Part shown: positions 9,642 through 22,628 of the stretch, piece by piece
How the letters are laid out: each line of letters begins with the position of its first letter
How positions within the stretch are numbered: the first letter of the stretch is position 1
Assembly (NCBI GenBank): GCA_965240325.2
Contig: OZ251223.1
Location: 806,001-870,000, forward strand
From: Rebecca billardiae RCC1528
Lineage: Eukaryota; Protista; Haptophyta
Length of the DNA: 64,000 nucleotides
Direction: 5' to 3'
Made by a program: the position numbers and the translations under genes
Notes under the pieces: model-generated
Told to the model about the DNA's origin: nothing
Seen by the model: the letters and a program-made list of their open reading frames with translations, nothing else
The model's database searches: none

Positions 9642-12569
9642 ATGACTGAGTGCATTGGCGTGCCGCTTGCCCAAGAGTGGTCCTGGTGAGCGCTCGAGGG
9701 ACGCGCGCCACCTGAACGTCGCGCCGAGCCGCGATGCGCGGCGTGAGGACTGGCCGTGACTGATTGGTCGCCGTGCGCTCACGGGTGCGACTGCGCCGCA
9801 GGGATTTCATCGGCGTGGGCTACTTTGCCAGTGTCTTCGGCGCCTTCGTCGGGCTGAGCACGATCACGTACGCACTCACCGTCCTCAAGCATCCCGCGTT
9901 TGCGCACTGGTTCTACGTGTTCGTCGCGTCGTCGGGAATGTCGATCGGAGGCAGCTCGATCTGGACGATGCACTTCGTCGGTGCGCGGACGAGCGCGCGG
10001 TGTTTGCGCCCGTGGGTCCGCGCTTTTCGCTGCCCCGCGGCACGTGCTCCCAAAACTGACGCGATGCACGTGGCGCGCGGCGAGCGCGCCCCCGCCGCTC
10101 GCCTTCCTGGCTGCAGGTATGAGGGCGCTCACGGTGGTCCGCTGCGATGGCGTCCACGTGCCCATGAAGCACAACGTCGTGCTCACGGTCATCTCTCTGG
10201 TCGCCGCGGTCGTGACCGGCGCCTTCTGCATGTACCTCGTCATGCCGATGAAGCCCGCCAAACTGGACGACGATCTGGAGTCGGCCGAGAAGACGAGGCG
10301 GCGCAGTGACAAGCTGGAGTACTGGCCAACGCCGTTCACCTTCCGCGGCACGATTGTGAAGATCGTCAAGTTCGACCTGGTGCGCTTCGTGGGCGCGACG
10401 GTGACGCTCATGGTGGGCGTGTGCGTGATGCACTACATGGTGCGCGCCGTGCGCGAGCCCGCACGTCCGCAACTGCTCCTGCTCGCCTCGAGCGGCTCGA
10501 GCTGGCTCGCACCGCCCTTCTTCCGTGCGGCCTCATCTGTCTCCGCTCGCTTGCCCGACCGCCCACCTGCCTGCGGCGCACCAGGGCATGATCGCGCAGC
10601 AGGGTCCGTACGTCAAGCACTTCTCACCCGGTGTGATCATCGCCTCCGTCGTGATCGCGCTCGTCGCGTCCGCCGCCGGCCTCTTCATCGTCGTGCAGGT
10701 GGCCGTGATGGGCCAGGTCAACTCGATCGGCCCGCGCACGGTCGCGGCCGTGGTCATCGGCGTCGCGGTAAACGCGATGCACTATACCGGCATGCTCTCC
10801 GCGACGTACGTGTATACGGGCGACGACACGACCGTGCTCGCCCACGGCTTCGGCCCGACGATGACTGTCGACCCGCTCGCGGTGTGCATCGTCGCGCTCA
10901 CCGTCGGCATCATGCAGCTGGTCGTCTGCCAGCACTACTCGGAGAAGCTGTACGTGCGGCAGCAGGCGATCAACGACGCGCTCGCGCGCAAGCTGCCCAA
11001 GGACGTGAAGGAGAAGCTCAAGAAGATCTACGACGCGGTGCTGCCCAACGAGGGCGGCTCCGTCGCCAACTACATCCCGGAGCTCGCCGCCGCCGACCCG
11101 AACAGGTTCGGGATCGTGATCTGCGACGTGAACGGGGAGGTCCACGCGGTGGGCGACGCGCACGAGCCGGTCACGATCCAGTCGTGCTGCAAGCCAATGC
11201 TGTACATGCTCGCGCTCGAAATGGCAGGCATCGAGGCCGTGTCGGCCAAGATCGGCACCGAGCCGTCCGGCCAGCCCTTCGACGCACTCAGCATTGACGC
11301 CACCGACAAGGCATACAACCCGTGCGCGCGCGCGCATGCGTCGCGCGCGCGCGCTCGTGCGAGCAGGCACGGCCAGGGCAGGGTGGCCGGCGCACCGCGC
11401 CGCGCGACCGCCACGCGCACGTCCGACACGCTCGCCGCGTGCTCCCCGCGCCGCCACCGCCCGCCGCCTCGCGTCGCAGCTTCGTGAACGCGGGCGCGAT
11501 CGCGAGCGCGGGCATCCTCCTCTCCACGCCCGGCGGCGCAGAGGACGCCGACGGCTTGTACAGCATCGCCGGGGCGGTGTGTCGGGACATGTCGAAGGAG
11601 GGAGTGCGGCAGCGCCTCGACCAAAAGGTGTTCGCCTCCGAGTCAGAGACGAACTCCAACAACCGGTGGATCGCCGAAGAGCTGGGCAAAAAGAAGATCG
11701 TCGAGGGCAACACCACCGCAGCGCTCGACGCGTACACGATGGCGTGCTCCATGATCACGACGGCGGAGGACGTCGCGGTGATGGCCGCGACGCTCGCCAA
11801 CAGCGGCCGCAACCCACTCACGAAGGAGGAGATCTTCGACACAGAGATCGTCGAGCACACGGTGACCGTGATGATGTCGTGCGGCATGTACAACGGTGCG
11901 GGCAAGTGGATCACCGACGTCGGCATCCCGGCCAAGTCGGGCGTCGCCGGCCTCGTCATGGGCGTCGTGCCCGGCGTGTGCGGCATCGGCATCTTCAGCC
12001 CGCGGCTCGACGGGAACGGCAACTCGACACGCGGCGTCGCGGTTGCCAAGATGGCCTCGGAGCTGCTCGATCTGCACGTGCTCAAGAAGCAGAAGAAGCA
12101 GGGACCGCTGTGCCCCTCGCCCTCGAAGAACAGGCGCAGCACTGAGGACTCGGCCAGCACCTTCTCGTCGCAGGGCAGCGTGGACATGCACGGCGACTCC
12201 CTCCAGAAGACGCAGACGAACGGCGGCGGCCCGCGCGTATCGGCTACCGGCAGCAAGAGTGGCGAGCGTCTGGCCGCCGCCGACGCGTCCGGCAACGGCA
12301 CGTCGAAAGTCCGCTACGTGCGCAAGTCGGCGCGCGGGAGCGTTGAGGGCCCCTCGCTATCGACGAGTAGGGCCACGAGCCCTGCGCGTACGCCGTCGCA
12401 GACGCCGTCCCCTCCACCCACGTCGGCTGCGACGGTAGCGCCCGTGGTACCAGCGCACGGCGCGCCCGCGGAGGACCCGGTCATCCTTTTCAGCGCCGCG
12501 GATGCGCCGGTGACGGCGCGCGTCACGCCGTCGCCGGCTGTTAAGCCAACTGCGGTCGAACGAACCTGA
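9642..12569 (+). CDS. MHYT membrane-sensor domain fused to glutaminase (790 aa; exons 9642-9685, 9802-9980, 10117-10439, 10585-11321, 11480-12569)
   Basis: Four GT-AG introns give a 2373-nt in-frame CDS. The N-half has multiple hydrophobic helices with IWTMHFVGM, VCVMHYMGM and VNAMHYTGM. The C-half has glutaminase motifs ANYIPELA, IQSCCKP, GTEPSGQPF, NPFVNAGAI, CGMYNGAG, GIPAKSGVAG, FSPRLDGNGNS. Both domains meet inside exon 4. Confidence 0.92.
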
Positions 12570-13057
12570 ACCGGAATAAACATCATGAATGAACGTCTGA
12601 GAAGTCATCCGGCATCCGCCGTAGTCTAATCACAGCAGGCTACAGTAATCCGGCAGGGCCTGCGCTCTAGCCTCTGCAGTACTGACCACAGTCCGGCGCA
12701 CCGTCGTCGTCGCCGAGTCGTCGTCTGCGCCGGACTGCCTGCGCGCGCGCGCGACTCTGCTGCTGACGACGATCGGACGATGGCATTCGGACTGCGCGGA
12801 TGCGACGACGACGTGACGCTCTTATACATAACGACGTGGTATGCGACGCTCTTATATTGTCAGCGTGACTCATGTAATGACGATGTGAGTCGCGTGACTC
12901 ATTTATAACTATGCATGCATGATGATGATCGAGTCGGTGAATAATCCGCCATATCGCCGGCGGATTCGCGGCCCGATTAATGCGCACGTCTGAAAGTCTG
13001 CTGGACGCCTGCTGGTCGTAGCAATAAATTCTATATATATGTATTAGCTACATAAAA

Positions 13058-15388: not shown

Positions 15389-16059
15389 GAATCAGTGGTG
15401 ATTACGACCCCGACGAAGCCAATATATATCGGTTGGTTACTTCGCTGATCCCGTATGGACGTGCGAAAATAGCCTCAAAGAAGCTGACGCTTGTATTGGA
15501 CTTGTAACCGTCCTACTTCACACAGAAGTGAACTCTCACGCCCGGCCGTCCACGATTGATTAGGGGAATGTTGTGGGCGCGGTTTTTTTCTCCGTGATGC
15601 ACCTGTAGAGAGGGTCTCAAAATTCGAAACTCGGTCTCCGCCAGCCCTAAAAATCGGCCCCCGCGTCCCTTTTTCTTGATCAAAGATCTTTTTGAAACGT
15701 GGTTCGGGCCCACTGGTGCGGGCTCCACGCTGCGCGCTCCGCCCTGCACCGCGGGCCATTATTATATATATAATTATATATATATATAATATATGCGATT
15801 TTAATGAATTAATTTTGATGCGATGGGGTTTGGTCGTCCGGCTTCAACCCTGAGTCGAGTGGCTCGCCATCAGGTGTCAAACACACACCGCCCTCGCGCT
15901 AGCTCCCGACGAGGCTCACGCGCGCACAGCTCGGACGGCGGATGAGGCTGGCGCGCGCCGGCGCCCCCGGCGGCGGCGGCGGCGGGTCAGCGGCGGGGCT
16001 ACTCGGACTATGTAGTCTCCTGCGGGGCGCGCCGCGCCAAACGACAAGCGCGAGTGGGA

Positions 16060-19000
16060 TTAATAGTACGGCTCGTCCACAGGACGGAGGAAGTCCTCCA
16101 CCTTCGACCAGAGCCGTTCCCTGTACCGATCCACCGACTGCTCGAGCCTGGCCTGCTCGATGGACTCGCGCCAGCCCGCCAAGGCGCGCGCGCAGCACGC
16201 GCTGTCGACGGGCGCCAGGTGGGTGAGACACAGGATGCCCGTGCGGGGCGAGTGCCGGTGGGGGAGCCGATCACGGCGGCGTCAGTGCCAGCGAAAAGGC
16301 GCACGCACGCGCGCTCATCGCGGGTGTGCGAGGGTCGGCGCCAGCCGGGCGCGCGGCGGCGCGCACCGAGCGTGCAGCACATCCGCGCGTGCGTTCTGCT
16401 CGCCGCGCCTCGCGTGCCAGTGCGCGCGCAGAGCGCCCCACACGCGCGACAGCAGCCGCCCGCTCCACGCGCGTCGAGCGCGCGCCTCCGCCGCGCGGGC
16501 GAGCGCTGGCAGCCGAGCGAGCTGGCGCCACGAGCGCGTGAGGGCGAGCGGTCTCGTGCGCACCGCCGCGCTGTGCAGCTGCACCCACGCGCGCACGGCG
16601 CGCACGGCGCGCCGAGCGCGCGCGGCGCGACCCCACGCGCGGAGCACGCGCGCGCGCGCTCGGGCGAGCCCAGCCGCCAGCGCGAGTGCCCGCCTCGCCG
16701 CGGCGGCCCGCACGCATGTCCGCCAGGGCCGCAGCCCGTAGAAGAGCAGCAGCGCGCGCAGGGCGTGCACGCGCGCCAGCTCGAGCTGCTCGAGCCGCAC
16801 GCGCCGCTCGAACGCCTGCTGCGCGCGCTGCATGGCGGACACGCGCTCCTGCGCGCGGCGCTGCATCTTGGCGCGCACGACCTCCTCCAGCGCCAGGCGC
16901 TCCGCCTCGAGCCGCGCCTCCTCCTCCGCGCGCTGCCGCTCGCGGTACCGCTCCTGCAGCGCCTCGCGCCGCTGCTGCCGCTGCGCGGCGCGCGCCTCCA
17001 TCGCGCTCGCGCGCCGCTGCTCGGCGGCGGAAGGGGCGCTGCGCGAGCTGAGGGGCGCGCCGGCCGACGCGCCGCGGCTGCGGGCGGTAGCAGCGCCGGG
17101 CGCGCCGCCGGGCTCGCTCGCGCCGCTGCTCGACGCGGGCGCCGTGCCGGCACCCACGGGGTCGTACGCACACGCCGACTGCCACGCGGCGCTGGGCGGC
17201 CGAGCGGCCGCCGCGGGCGCGAGCGGCGTGCGCTGCGCACGCGCGAGCGCCTTCGCGCACGCCTTGCCACGCGTGGGCTCGACATGCGCTGCCGGCTGGC
17301 CGGCCGTCGCGGGCGGATCCGGTGTCACCTCCTCCGCCTCGACCGCACGCGCGGCGGCGGCCTGCGGCGGCGAGCTGAGCGCGGCCGCCGCCGGCAGCGC
17401 CTCATGCGCGCCGGGCGGTCGGGTGGCAGCCGGCCGAGCACCCCGCGGCGCACGCGGCGACGGCGCTGGCGCGTGGTGCTCGTGGTCGTCGAGGCGCTGC
17501 GCGCCGGCCGCGACGGCATCGTCTTGCGCCTCCGGCCCGCCTGGCTCTGCGAGGCCGTCGGCGGCTGCGGCGCCGGGCGCCGACGCGTCGCGGTCCGCGC
17601 CGTGCACGCGGCGCGCGTGCGCTCCGAGCGCGCGCGCGAGCTGTGTGCGCCGCTCGGCCGCCGCGGCCTCGAGCGCCTCTTCGGCCCGCCGCATCGCAGG
17701 AAGTGCGAGCAAGGCCGACCACACGCGCCTCGCCACTCGCGCGCGCCACGCCGCCAGCGCGCGCGCCTCCTGCGCGCGCACGACGCGCGTGTGCTCCGCG
17801 TGCACGCTCAGCTGCCGCTCGAGCACGGCCGCGGCCGCCACGCGCTGCCACTCGCGCAGGTGGCGCACGCGGGCGCGCTCGGCGAGCACGCGCGCGGCGT
17901 CGAGCACGCGCGCACGCGCCGAGGCGACGAGCGCGTGGTGCCACGCGCGAAGGATGCTTCGCGCCAGCGCGCGCTCTGCCAGCGGCGCGTGGCGCAGCGC
18001 GGGCGCGGCGCTCGGCGCGGCGAGCGGCGGCGCCGGCGGCTGCGCGCCGCGCCGCGCCTCGATCCGCCCTTCGATCTGACGGCGCTCGAGGTGGAGCGCG
18101 TCGAGCTCATGCTGCATACGCTCCCGCTCGTGCTTCCGCTCGACGCGGGCGATCTCCTGCTGCCGAGCGGCGTCGACGCGGGCGCGCTCGTCCGAGAGCT
18201 CCGCGCGCAGGCTGACCAGGTCCGCCTCCGCCACCGCCGCGCTCGCGCCCGCGCCGGCGCGCGGCGCGGATGGCGTCGCGGCGCGCGCGGTGGCGCTCCC
18301 CGGCCGCGTGCGCTCGGCGGGCCGCGCGTGCAGCCGTGCGCCGCTCGCGCATGCGCCGTCGGGCTCGGCCGGGGAAGGCGAGGGCACCCGCGGCGCGCTG
18401 CGGCCGCTTGCTCGGCCCGCGGACGCCGCCCGATTCGCACGCTGCAGCGAGAGGTGCGCAGCGTGCAGCTCCGCGTGCTGCTCGATGCGCGCATCGAGCT
18501 GGCGGTGCCGGCGCTCGAGTCTCTCGCGCGCAATCCGCTCCGCTCGCAGCTGCATCGACGACAGGCCGCTCGTGGCGGTGCGCGCTGCGCCCGCGGCGGC
18601 GGACAGGCTGAAGCCGCCGGGGGCGGCCGCGGCCGCGGCACCGCCAGGCTCGACCGACGACGCCGTGGGTGCGGCGTGCGCCGAGCGTGCGCAGAGTGGC
18701 TGCGACGAGAACAAGGTCCCAGACACGTTCGTGCCCGCGCTCGCCCCGGACGGGCGCTCCGGTGGGATGGGCACCCGCTCCGAATGCATCCGCGTGCGGT
18801 GCGCGCTGCTCTGCGTCTTGCGCAGCAGCGAGGGCGGCACGACGAGGTCGCGCGCCGCGCGCGCCGCGGCGCTTGGATCTGCGCGCGAGGCGGAAGACTG
18901 CCATCGAGGTCCATCGAGCGACGCCTCGACGTGCGCATGCGTGTCCCCACTGGGCCGCGTGAGGCGCGACGCGCCGAGCGCGGGCATCGCCGCGTGTGTG

Positions 19001-19170
19001 GACGGGCCCTCGCTCGCTGCGGCGCCCGCCGAGCCGGCTCCGTTGGCCGCGCCCGACGTCCAGCGGCGGAGGAGCTGGCGCGCAGCGATCGCCGTCTCGA
19101 GCCGCCCCTCCTCGCCCTCGGCAAGGGACGGCGGCAGGTGCGACGGCAGCACGGGGTCGACGCCGCTCAT
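16060..19170 (-). CDS. Coiled-coil protein with Sfi1-like Trp repeats, CCDC191/KIAA1407-like (exons 19170-16367, 16201-16060)
   Basis: Long coding-like ORF with periodic LRAW/REW/RSW motifs, AMEARAAQRQQRRE coiled coil and LLFYGLRPWR. The spliced last exon reads ...RYRERLWSKVEDFL..*. Family assignment is from recalled motif resemblance. Confidence 0.65.
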
Positions 19171-21017
19171 GACTTCGTCGTGAGGATTCAAACCGTGCGT
19201 TCGTCGAACCGCGCGCCGCGCTTCGCCGCCGCGGCGAAACTTTCGTCAGCTTGATGGAATACCCCCGCGAGAAATTCAGAAGAGACGAATTTAGAGACGC
19301 AGGCGGGGCGCGGGCGGGCGCCACGGCACGTACGTGCCCTCTGGACGGGCATTGATGAGCCGTGGCGAGGTCGCCAAATCGCGTGGCGTGGTCCCAGAGC
19401 AGGCTGCTACCTGCCCTGACCAGCTTGCTAGCCCTGCCGGTCGTTGATCACACCGCCGTTGACAGGCGCGCGGCACGCCACGCGTATATTAGTCTAGCAC
19501 GGCTAAAATCCGCGAGTCGACTGGCGTGTCCGCCGACCGGCGTTCGCATGACTACCGCGCAGCCAACATTGATCGTCAGACTCACGACTTGTGGGGTCAG
19601 ACAGAACATTGACAGGTCTGCACCCTCGCTTGGCATGCCCCAGAGGTCAGCACGGACATCAGAAGGGTCCGGGCCCGGGCCGCATCCTGACGCGCAGCCT
19701 CACGCCGCGCCGGTGTCACAATAATGGGGCGTCGATGCCACGTGGACGTGGACGTGAGAGTGGTCAAAAAGTCGCGGAAGGGAAGCCGCTACCCAGCCCC
19801 ACGTGCTCGTACGACGCTGACCGGCGTGTGGCACGCCCCCCGGTCCCGGGCACGCGCCTTGGATCCATCGATAGTCCCCCTCGGGGCGCCAGTCCGGCTC
19901 AAAAGCCTTGCCGCGATCCGCGAGATGGCTGCCCATCGCTCCCAGCGTGGGCCATCTCTCGCACAACGAGGGAGCGCCCACCCGGACACCACGGGCGCGA
20001 CGGCGCGTGTGGCGTTACGGGTTGTGTGGCATGCACGTGCATGAGGTATCTATGCACATTGGCGCCTGCAATCTACCTCCACTGTCGCTTGGCATGTGCA
20101 AGCGACCGCTGCTGTGATCTTTGATCGGACGCCTGCCCGCACGGCTCCCTGCTCGGTTTCTTACCCTGCGCTCCTGGATGGGTGAAAGTGAGCAGTGCAC
20201 GTAGCCTTCAGAGGGAGGCTGCCAGCGCGTGCGCGAGCTCTCGAGCCCATCCGATCCTTGCAGACACCCCCAAGAAGAGCTCCAGAGCCATACACGACAG
20301 AAGCTGCAGAAAAATCCCAATTCAAAAAGCAATCACCGTCATGCCTGGTATACTACCACGGGAACGGAGACGCTGGCCCTGGAGCGGCGAGCGAAGCTAC
20401 AGGCGAGCTGCGAGCGCTGACGGCGTTCCATGAAAGATACGCAAGCATGCACCACCCACAACTCCGACCTCCCCCGGCGTTATGCACTTGCCTTTGCCCG
20501 TGCACGGTCGGCGTGCACGTCGATCACTGGCCATGCGGAAGCAGGGACAAGAGGAGCTGGAGAGAGGTGAATACGAGTCGCCCAGCGATGCCAAGGCCTG
20601 AAGAAGAGTCATCTACGACCACCAAACCCCCGCGCCCTGCCGTGCCCGCACTCTCATGCCTCCCATACCTCGGCCCTTGTGCGTCGTGGAAGGCTTTTGC
20701 GGTTTGCCTCAACTGCCGGCAGCCCGGCAGCCATCGTGCCCCGACGGCGAGGGGGACGGCTGTAATATGGGGGTAGAATGATCCCCTGCTGCGGCCTGCG
20801 GAAAGCACGTACTATACGGGGGTAAGATTGCGATTGGGTCGTACTGTAATACCCTTGTATTCATCAGGTTTTCATCCCGACTATCCAAAACGCCGCACAC
20901 ACTACTATGCTGCATAATAAAGGGCGATGAAATGAACTCCGAGCGTTCGCCCGCCCGCCCACAAGCTCCCACCAAGACTCGACCACCCACCCACGGCCGA
21001 GACAACGCCGCGGTGGA

Positions 21018-22628
21018 ATGAGCGCGACGCTCACACACGACGACGATCTCCGCAGTGGCGCACGGGCCCACGTGCGCCCGAGCTCGTTCGCGGCTTCGCA
21101 GCCGCCGCCGGCGCAGGCACAGCACAGCTCGCTGACGCCGCCCGCCGTTTCCACGGGCAAGCAACCAGGGAGCTCGCACGCGGCCGAGGGGACGACAGCG
21201 CAACTCCCCCAGGCGCGCGAGACCCGGGACGGGAGGATGTACTGGACGCCCGCGGGCGTCCCCACGCATGCGCACTCGACGGTCGTCCCAGGCGTGGCCA
21301 TGCGCTTCTGGAGCGCGGCCGGGCTGGCCGAAACGGACGTGATGACAGCTGAACAATATGCCGAGGTGAGCGCGCTCATCGCGAGCGCGCTCACCATCAT
21401 GGGCTCGCAGCACGCGTCGGGGGCGAGAGCGTGCGAGACGCTGCCGCTCGAGTCGATGCGCCGCGGCGCGCGCGCACTCGACGCAGCCGACGGCCTGCGC
21501 GCTGCGCAGCTGTGCACGAGCGTGATCGAGGCCACGGCGGAGTGCACGCGCAGTGAGAACGAGCTCGAGCTGGTCGCATCTCTCGCGCGCCTCCACCAGC
21601 ACGTCACCGCCGTCGATGACGCGGACTGTGGCGCGCTCCGAGTCGCACTCCGCCAGTGCGCCGCAATCAAAGGCGGCGCGCGCAGCTGGGCGGAGCTGCA
21701 GCGCCGGCTGCGCACGGTGGCCGTGCTGCGCAGCGCAAAGCGCGTGTACGTGCGCACAGTCGGCCACGTGCGCGAGCGCGCCGAGGCCGAGGCGGCGGCG
21801 TACGACGAGATGCGCGCAGAGGAGGACGCCTCGCTGTCGGAGGAGAACACGCGCATGTGTGCCGAGCAGCGCGCGCAGGTGGAGGCGGCGCGCGTGCAAG
21901 CGCAAGTGGACATCGTGACAGCGCTCTCGCACGCGCGCGCCGCCCCCAGCCGCGCAGGCCCCGGCAGCCCGGCGGCGGAGCTCGTGGGCGGGGCCGAGGA
22001 GGAGGAAGCGGCCGAGGAGGACGCGGCCGAGGGCGGCCCGCAGCTGTTCGCAGAGTTGCAGCGCGCGCACCACGGCCTCCCCGGGGCCCGCGCCGCGCTC
22101 GGCGCAGCCATCGGGAGCGCGATCGACGCCGGCGTCCCCGTGGACGGCGCGGAGATGCGGCTGGCCCTCGACCTGATGCTCAGAGCCACTTCTCGCGAGA
22201 ACCTCGTGAGCGCGCTGGTGCTTGGCGCCGCGCCGGCTGGCGCCGCGCCGGCGGCTCAGAGCGTCACGGACGTGGTGGCCGAGTGTGGCGGGAAGAAGAA
22301 GAGCTCGCTGGGCGGGGACCGACTGCTGCGCGCGGCACTTGAGGACGCAGTTGCCGCAGGCGTGCTGCCAAACGCGACGGAGCGAGCGCGCGTGCAGCTC
22401 CTCCGGCGCCGCTGCCGCGCGGCACGGCGGCACGCGGCGGCGGCCACGACGCGCATGGCTAGGTCGGCCATGATGACGGAGGCGGAGAAGGGCGGCGACG
22501 CGCTCGGTGGCGCGTCGCCGGCCGTCTTGCCCGTCCCGGGCGCGCCCAAGCCATCCCCGTGGCGCCCGGCCAGCCTCGTCTCCGCCCTTTCGGACTTGGA
22601 GGCAGGCTCGGCGAACTCAGATGACTAG
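21018..22628 (+). CDS. Hypothetical alpha-helical protein (536 aa)
   Basis: Single ATG-initiated ORF with GC3-biased codons and protein-like composition; no family recognised. Confidence 0.6.
   Translation: MSATLTHDDDLRSGARAHVRPSSFAASQPPPAQAQHSSLTPPAVSTGKQPGSSHAAEGTTAQLPQARETRDGRMYWTPAGVPTHAHSTVVPGVAMRFWSAAGLAETDVMTAEQYAEVSALIASALTIMGSQHASGARACETLPLESMRRGARALDAADGLRAAQLCTSVIEATAECTRSENELELVASLARLHQHVTAVDDADCGALRVALRQCAAIKGGARSWAELQRRLRTVAVLRSAKRVYVRTVGHVRERAEAEAAAYDEMRAEEDASLSEENTRMCAEQRAQVEAARVQAQVDIVTALSHARAAPSRAGPGSPAAELVGGAEEEEAAEEDAAEGGPQLFAELQRAHHGLPGARAALGAAIGSAIDAGVPVDGAEMRLALDLMLRATSRENLVSALVLGAAPAGAAPAAQSVTDVVAECGGKKKSSLGGDRLLRAALEDAVAAGVLPNATERARVQLLRRRCRAARRHAAAATTRMARSAMMTEAEKGGDALGGASPAVLPVPGAPKPSPWRPASLVSALSDLEAGSANSDD

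Follow-up and report, generated by a model that had tools for sequence, protein, structure and literature searches.

A membrane-embedded MHYT domain fused to a glutaminase in the haptophyte Rebecca billardiae: a candidate transmembrane receptor-enzyme

A 64,000-nucleotide window of the Rebecca billardiae RCC1528 genome (GenBank assembly GCA_965240325.2, contig OZ251223.1, positions 806,001 to 870,000 of the forward strand) carries a gene whose predicted product begins with an MHYT membrane domain and continues into a glutaminase. Receptors usually end in kinases, cyclases, or DNA-binding domains, and the locus raises the question of whether this combination is genuine and, if so, whether the membrane domain controls the enzyme. 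The reading we favor, to which we assign a probability of roughly 0.55, is that the protein is a single-chain transmembrane receptor-enzyme, with copper-dependent gating by a gas or redox signal as the probable mode of control. The gene lies on the + strand at 9642..12569, and all positions given here are those of the window.

The strongest evidence that the two domains belong to one protein comes from a single exon. Pfam searches were conducted exon by exon with cut-offs of 21 bits for MHYT and 27 bits for Glutaminase. Exon 4 alone (10585-11319, 245 amino acids) matches MHYT (PF03707) in two stretches (E 7e-10, 39.2 bits) and also matches Glutaminase (PF04960) over profile positions 1-83 (E 2.4e-26, 93 bits). 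Because this one exon matches both families, neither splicing nor gene prediction created the fusion, and a preliminary description of this DNA, made from the letters before any database search, had likewise argued that the fusion is not a splicing artefact. Exon 5 takes up the Glutaminase profile at position 92 and follows it to position 285 of 286 (E 1.8e-57, 195 bits), and NCBIfam glutaminase models match as well. Exon 3 yields a weak MHYT match (19.1 bits), as expected from a fragment, and full-length homologues score 50-87 bits against the same profile. The MHYT assignment itself, also made in that description, is borne out by the exon 4 score and by the fold match of the closest homologue presented below. 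No EF-hand_14 or ankyrin match of the sort that marks metazoan-type GLS was found by Pfam in the exons of this protein.

The gene that contains this exon was rebuilt from the sequence as a coding region of 2373 nucleotides that specifies 790 amino acids plus a stop codon, in agreement with the cleanly spliced five-exon model first put forward. Its frame closes from 9642 to 12569 across GT..AG introns. Exon 1 (9642..9685) encodes a short, predicted extracellular N-terminus that includes an invariant cysteine, Cys4. Exon 2 (9802..9980) carries the first two transmembrane (TM) helices and ends within the first MHYT motif, whereas exon 3 (10117..10439) carries the loop with the invariant Cys84, TM3, a basic loop predicted to be cytosolic (residues 117-159, with 10 Lys and Arg), and TM4, which terminates in the second motif at the exon end. 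The first two motifs are therefore each assembled over a splice junction (MHFV/GM and MHYM/GM). Exon 4 (10585..11321) supplies TM5 to TM7 with the third motif, followed by the linker and the opening third of the glutaminase domain, and exon 5 (11480..12569) supplies the remainder of that domain and a disordered tail rich in Ser, Thr, and Pro.

Several features support this model. The four introns, which are 116, 136, 145, and 158 nucleotides long, all begin with GTG(A/C)GCG and finish with CAG. The GC content of the coding sequence at codon positions 1, 2, and 3 is 0.60, 0.47, and 0.91, the introns lie evenly at 0.73-0.84, and the window as a whole is at 0.68. Such a pattern is typical of genuine coding DNA when the genome is GC-rich. 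Furthermore, all four splice junctions are gap-free in alignment to homologues derived from transcriptomes, and thus the splice model is independently supported. The region is an intact nuclear gene, and no second copy of it was found within the 64-kb window.

The MHYT domain occupies residues 1-298 (9642..10932, a span that includes introns 1-3). Hydropathy reveals seven membrane helices across residues 16-298, and the motifs MHFVGM (residues 71-76), MHYMGM (179-184), and MHYTGM (247-252; 10777..10794) fall at the ends of TM2, TM4, and TM6. The three motifs noted at the outset are thus all intact. When Lys and Arg residues are counted by predicted side of the membrane, 20 fall inside, including those in the 43-residue loop at 117-159 and in the stretch after TM7, and 4 fall outside. 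Because of this asymmetry, the N-terminus is predicted to be outside, the MHYT motifs are predicted to be at the outer face, and the glutaminase is predicted to be in the cytosol. The same arrangement of motifs has been described for CoxC and bacterial MHYT domains (PMC11347149). Cys4 (9651-9653) and Cys84 (10143-10145), both on the predicted extracellular side, are invariant in all full-length family members, which suggests a disulfide that links the N-terminal strand to the TM2-TM3 loop.

Conservation is not confined to the enzyme. The motif histidines H72, H180, and H248 are invariant in all 10 aligned fusions, including one (P0006) whose motifs are otherwise degenerate, and Y249 and G251 of the third motif are equally invariant. 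Between the window protein and its closest relatives, identity is about 50% in the membrane helices and 51-59% in the enzyme, and it is about 20% in the loops and tail. Because the motif histidines do not vary and the membrane domain is conserved nearly as well as the enzyme, the MHYT portion is likely to be more than an anchor. TM7 (residues 276-298) leads into a basic helix, about 21 residues long (299-319), that extends to a conserved K-L-P hinge (10864..10995 for the whole segment), at which the glutaminase begins.

The glutaminase catalytic domain comprises residues 320-632 (10996..12092, a span that includes intron 4), as delimited by Pfam, NCBIfam, and alignments. The domain aligns without gaps to mammalian GLS and Micrococcus Mglu chains, and these alignments, together with a family alignment, reveal that the catalytic and substrate positions are all present: Y345, S382-x-x-K385, N431, E482, N489, Y513, Y565, S581, and V583. 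The catalytic Ser382-Cys-Cys-Lys385 segment (11182..11193) aligns with S-C-V-K of mammalian GLS. These residues are intact in the window protein and in 8 of 9 aligned relatives. Their presence had been noted from the letters, and the alignments establish it position by position. Judged by these residues, the glutaminase looks catalytically competent. The 158-residue C-terminal tail that follows (residues 633-790; 12093..12566) is of low complexity and unconserved, with about 20% identity to relatives.

Structure predictions are consistent with this domain organization. Models were made with AlphaFold2 from P0160, the closest full-length homologue, by using a 60-row alignment. The full-length model has a mean predicted local distance difference test score (pLDDT) of 82.9 and a predicted template-modelling score (pTM) of 0.68, with pLDDT above 90 in most of each domain. 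TM7 and the segment that follows it form a single continuous helix (residues 310-347 of P0160), after which there is an L-P break and then the first enzyme helix; the tail is disordered (pLDDT <50). The glutaminase part, which is above 90 in pLDDT across the domain and is 58% identical to that of the window protein, superimposes on human GLS with a root-mean-square deviation of 1.4-1.5 Å over about 300 residues (Foldseek). Folded alone, the MHYT part reaches a pTM of 0.83 and matches the AlphaFold database models of YkoW, NbdA, and MucR with TM-scores of 0.57-0.60 at a probability of 1.00; this range widens to 0.53-0.60, again at a probability of 1.00, when the model of CC_0091 is included. 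No solved structure matching the MHYT fold was found (best Protein Data Bank E-value 0.1). Likewise, the whole architecture was without a match among the AlphaFold database fold clusters and in the ESM Atlas, searched by features and by shape, where only the glutaminase part found matches.

The preliminary description implied that this architecture was unique, and this proved incorrect. About ten colinear relatives with both domains, which are 37-51% identical to the window protein over their full length, are present in public transcriptome and metagenome data, where their functional annotation does not go beyond 'glutaminase A'. An exhaustive HMMER search with exon 4 against 1.84 billion cluster representatives recovered six proteins that match it over its full length (P0001, P0003, P0004, P0005, P0006, and P0012). 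Pfam identifies both domains in five of these, the sixth being P0006 with its degenerate motifs. Two short fragments (P0002 and P0020) span part of both halves of the exon, and a word-based search added P0157, P0158, P0159, and P0160. Among these proteins, P0160 derives from a transcriptome of the green alga Pyramimonas (MMETSP1081, taxid 36882), and P0001 and P0157 are open reading frames (ORFs) from the transcriptome of Gymnodinium smaydae (EukProt), the former truncated at its N-terminus and the latter complete. P0158 and P0159 come from JGI, whereas P0003, P0004, P0005, P0006, and P0012 come from ENA/Logan. P0160 and P0157 share 51% and 50.6% identity with the window protein over 682 and 628 amino acids, respectively. 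The window protein differs from its relatives in having its own long tail rich in Ser, Thr, and Pro. It is itself absent from the public protein collections searched, where the best match is 50-60% identical.

The evidence so far points to a eukaryotic family. On the longer contigs that encode relatives, the neighboring genes are of eukaryotic type and include F-actin capping protein beta, TMEM237, Sas10/Utp3, and a P2X-like receptor. No bacterial MHYT-glutaminase fusion was found among the 1.84 billion representatives. When the genomes of 185,579 prokaryotic species, one per species, were scanned by pattern, 33 MHYT-only loci emerged, and none of these (0/33) has a glutaminase within 3 kb. 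Bacterial origin or contamination was considered for the locus and is ruled out by the spliceosomal introns, by the eukaryotic neighbors on homologue contigs, and by the absence of a bacterial fusion from the collections searched. Nine other proteins sampled from among the high-scoring HMMER hits that matched in two stretches turned out to be tandem glutaminases bearing ankyrin repeats. The MHYT part, when used as the query of a local search, was not found in the other retrieved matches.

One relative departs from the common pattern. In P0012 (677 amino acids, from a Logan contig), the catalytic Ser is replaced by Ala and the Lys by Ser, and the Tyr equivalents of Y345 and Y565 are both replaced by His; the three MHYT histidines are retained. 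To judge from these replacements, P0012 is probably a pseudoenzyme paralogue, and some members of the family may use the glutaminase fold without catalysis. The locus of P0006 also attracted our attention. On its Logan contig (L001:3499-6403 and 9663-11033), the divergent MHYT-like glutaminase gene adjoins two genes for multi-PAS-domain proteins and a gene for a weakly P2X-receptor-like protein, an arrangement that looks like a sensory gene cluster in a compact eukaryotic genome. Separately, two JGI metagenome proteins, P0164 (640 amino acids) and P0171 (821 amino acids), carry MHYT domains that are 28-32% identical to that of the window protein; the 350-550 residues that come after these domains match no Pfam family.

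The glutaminase domains nearest to that of the window protein (49-62% identity) place the fusion in a broader context. All of them start 13-35 residues past a membrane helix, and they share an A-K-L-P-x-N-V-Q-E entry motif, which in the forms with a single TM helix lies 13-20 residues beyond that helix. What precedes the helix varies. The window protein and its colinear relatives have MHYT as the N-terminal module, P0152 (MMETSP) has a Bmp/PnrA-like solute-binding domain, and P0162 (from Pelagophyceae sp. CCMP2097), P0021, and P0030 have PBP_like_2. P0103 combines NMT1/THI5-like and ephrin-receptor-like modules, and P0014 has a cadherin-like module. Three of the single-TM relatives begin with a hydrophobic, signal-peptide-like N-terminus. 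The name given to P0162 at NCBI is only 'beta-lactamase/transpeptidase-like protein'.

Phylogenetic analysis groups these proteins together. Unrooted trees were built by a careful maximum-likelihood analysis of 55 glutaminase domains and as a quick tree of 101 rows. In the 55-domain tree, nine full-length MHYT fusions, four single-TM receptor forms, and three fragments fall into one clade with a support of 100/100, within which the window protein pairs with the Pyramimonas protein (support 100/98). The ankyrin/EF-hand glutaminases make up a clade of their own (100/100), and a mostly bacterial group likewise stands apart. Inside the first clade, MHYT fusions are intermixed with single-TM forms, and because well-supported branches force at least two changes of label, the N-terminal modules have been exchanged more than once. 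The clade is thus a small and so far eukaryote-only set of glutaminases that always sit directly behind a membrane helix and whose N-terminal modules are interchangeable. A sister relationship between this clade and the ankyrin-type eukaryotic glutaminases was considered and dropped, given that sisterhood is undefined for three clades without a root.

The proposal that the window protein is a receptor-enzyme gains weight from three of the observations above: members of the same enzyme clade are joined to solute-binding and cadherin-like ectodomains by a common short stretch that follows the membrane helix, the motif histidines do not vary, and conservation extends to the membrane domain. If CoxC is taken as a guide, the His, Met, and Tyr residues might bind copper close to the outer face and react to a diatomic gas. 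The resulting change would pass by way of TM7 and the helix that follows it to the glutaminase, whose activity or oligomeric state would be altered, and the output would be a changed local conversion of glutamine to glutamate and NH4+. Copper and gas binding, gating, and a physiological role are all inferences. With regard to physiology, one can speculate that the protein adjusts the glutamine pool, that it provides a local supply of glutamate or ammonium, or that it influences pH. A bolder version of the proposal is that glutaminase is the output of an unrecognized family of eukaryotic transmembrane receptors, with solute-binding ectodomains at one end of the range of sensors and a copper-dependent MHYT gas sensor at the other, and that in this alga an NO, O2, or CO signal from outside or from the membrane would directly set the rate of glutamine hydrolysis. 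We advance this version tentatively and would sooner expect it to need revision than to stand in full.

A number of observations weigh against the receptor-enzyme proposal. A search for RNA runs that carry the gene returned none. One run of any kind, which holds 19% of the gene's words, gave two low-depth contigs of 225 and 151 nucleotides that contain no exon joints, and one of the two extends 8 nucleotides into intron 4 and looks like DNA. Gas sensing by an MHYT domain has been demonstrated experimentally for one bacterial protein only, CoxC (PMC11347149). The structure models depict a homologue that is 51% identical to the window protein, not the window protein itself. Moreover, P0012 lacks the catalytic residues, so hydrolysis is not a conserved output in every member, and the family is rare, at about a dozen sequences, which leaves the conservation statistics thin.

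Other explanations of the locus must be weighed against these facts. The most serious is that MHYT is an anchor that tethers, and perhaps dimerizes, a constitutively active glutaminase at the membrane, for example beside amino-acid or ammonium transporters, with no gating by a ligand. Glutaminases of the GLS type are regulated by oligomerization, so tethering alone could matter, and membrane proximity as such is conserved in the single-TM relatives. However, an anchor has no need for three invariant membrane-embedded histidines, conserved Met and Tyr residues, and helices that are about 50% identical; the sister proteins bear bona fide ligand-binding ectodomains; and the connection to the enzyme is short, helical, and constant in length rather than a floppy tether. 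We therefore regard a pure anchor as improbable, though it deserves to be taken seriously. A related idea, raised as an alternative in the preliminary description, is that the glutaminase fold serves to detect cytosolic glutamine, and that nitrogen status is signaled from it to the tail or the membrane domain, with any hydrolysis being incidental. The retention of the entire architecture and of all three MHYT histidines in P0012, despite its catalytic changes, makes this conceivable for that protein. For the window protein it is unlikely, because the catalytic and substrate residues are complete here and in nearly all aligned relatives, and the enzyme is followed by no signaling domain but only by a tail that is not conserved.

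Two further explanations concern the gene and its orientation in the membrane. The gene could be an unexpressed or decaying copy, or an artefact of prediction that joins two neighbors, and the absence of the window protein from public collections, with a best match of only 50-60% identity, could be taken to agree with this. It is nonetheless difficult to credit for an open frame of 2373 nucleotides over five exons with canonical splice sites and a third-position GC content of 0.91, in which one exon contains both domains, all functional residues are retained, and transcriptome ORFs from other species are colinear with the protein along its entire length. Alternatively, the enzyme might face the outside or an organelle lumen and hydrolyze external glutamine, MHYT serving as the base that holds it in the membrane. 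Charge bias is the sole basis of the assigned topology, which leaves an opening for such a reversal. Even so, the ratio of 20 to 4 favors a cytosolic C-terminus and agrees with the established topology of MHYT domains (PMC11347149), and the invariant cysteine pair is on the predicted outside. In addition, the solute-binding domains of the single-TM relatives are across the membrane helix from the enzyme, in three cases behind a signal-peptide-like N-terminus. We consider a reversed orientation to be very improbable.

Comparison with known systems helps to define what is new. According to the literature, MHYT domains are paired with histidine kinase, GGDEF, EAL, PAS, or DNA-binding domains, and the hosts are bacteria and some fungi (PMC11347149). 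The only experimental precedent for copper-dependent gas sensing is CoxC of Afipia carboxidovorans, an MHYT-LytTR protein in which CO relieves DNA binding only when Cu2+ is present and O2 acts as an antagonist (PMC11347149). Like CoxC, NbdA, MucR, and YkoW/DgcW, the window protein begins with a seven-TM MHYT domain whose motifs terminate TM2, TM4, and TM6 at the predicted outer face, and a single output domain, predicted to be cytosolic, follows in the same chain. Unlike CoxC and the MHYT-GGDEF/EAL proteins, its output is a metabolic hydrolase rather than a cyclic-di-GMP enzyme, a kinase, or a DNA-binding domain. It also differs from bacterial MHYT proteins in that its host is a eukaryote with introns and its MHYT domain shares only about 30% identity with theirs. 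Where CoxC has a linker of about 60 disordered residues, the window protein has a short continuous helix of about 21.

On the enzyme side, the catalytic domain is the same as that of the mammalian mitochondrial enzyme GLS/GAC and of the bacterial glutaminases YbaS, YbgJ, and Micrococcus Mglu, to which the catalytic and substrate residues align without gaps. GLS, however, is soluble and has EF-hand_14 and ankyrin modules, and bacterial glutaminases are soluble and carry STAS or cyclic nucleotide monophosphate-binding modules, none of which is present in the window protein. The activation-loop segment G-L-R-F-N-K-L of GLS reads G-Q-P-F-D-A-L here. With receptor guanylyl cyclases, and with other receptor-enzymes of one chain whose ectodomains are of the solute-binding type, the protein shares, by analogy and without homology, a swappable sensor, a TM helix, a short helical segment, and a cytosolic catalytic domain. 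In contrast to those receptors, its output hydrolyzes a central metabolite and makes no second messenger. In the literature searched, there was no paper that combines MHYT with glutaminase, in keeping with the original impression that the architecture is undescribed, nor was there a description of a membrane-bound, transmembrane, membrane-anchored, or receptor-like glutaminase. What is new here is that, in eukaryotes, a membrane sensor is joined in a single chain to an output of a new type, in sequences that are public yet unrecognized.

The surroundings of the gene offer a few observations of their own. An AATAAA hexamer at 12574-12579, a few bases past the stop codon, may be a polyadenylation signal. 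Directly downstream, at 12800-12910, are short direct repeats, with two copies each of GACGCTCTTATA and CGTGACTCAT within about 90 nucleotides, and these may mark the end of a mobile element. Farther along, very long ORFs of up to 1066 amino acids overlap on both strands at 16054-19254 and 20709-22628; these may be chance frames in GC-rich DNA or an unrecognized gene. No Pfam match was obtained for them or for the other neighboring long ORFs at 13.7-22.6 kb.

The family of receptor-like glutaminases is a more interesting lead than the single fusion with which we began. Should MHYT prove to be an anchor only, the finding would still define an unannotated clade of membrane-bound glutaminases. 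If the receptor-enzyme proposal is correct, a gas or redox signal would be coupled to the main metabolite of nitrogen status without a second messenger, and glutamine hydrolysis as the output of a receptor would represent a different wiring of environment to metabolism. The modularity of the family, with MHYT, phosphate-type, nucleoside-type, and NMT1-type binding modules, provides several independent handles on this possibility in marine protists. Finally, a eukaryotic MHYT protein with a readily assayed output could help to settle what MHYT domains sense.

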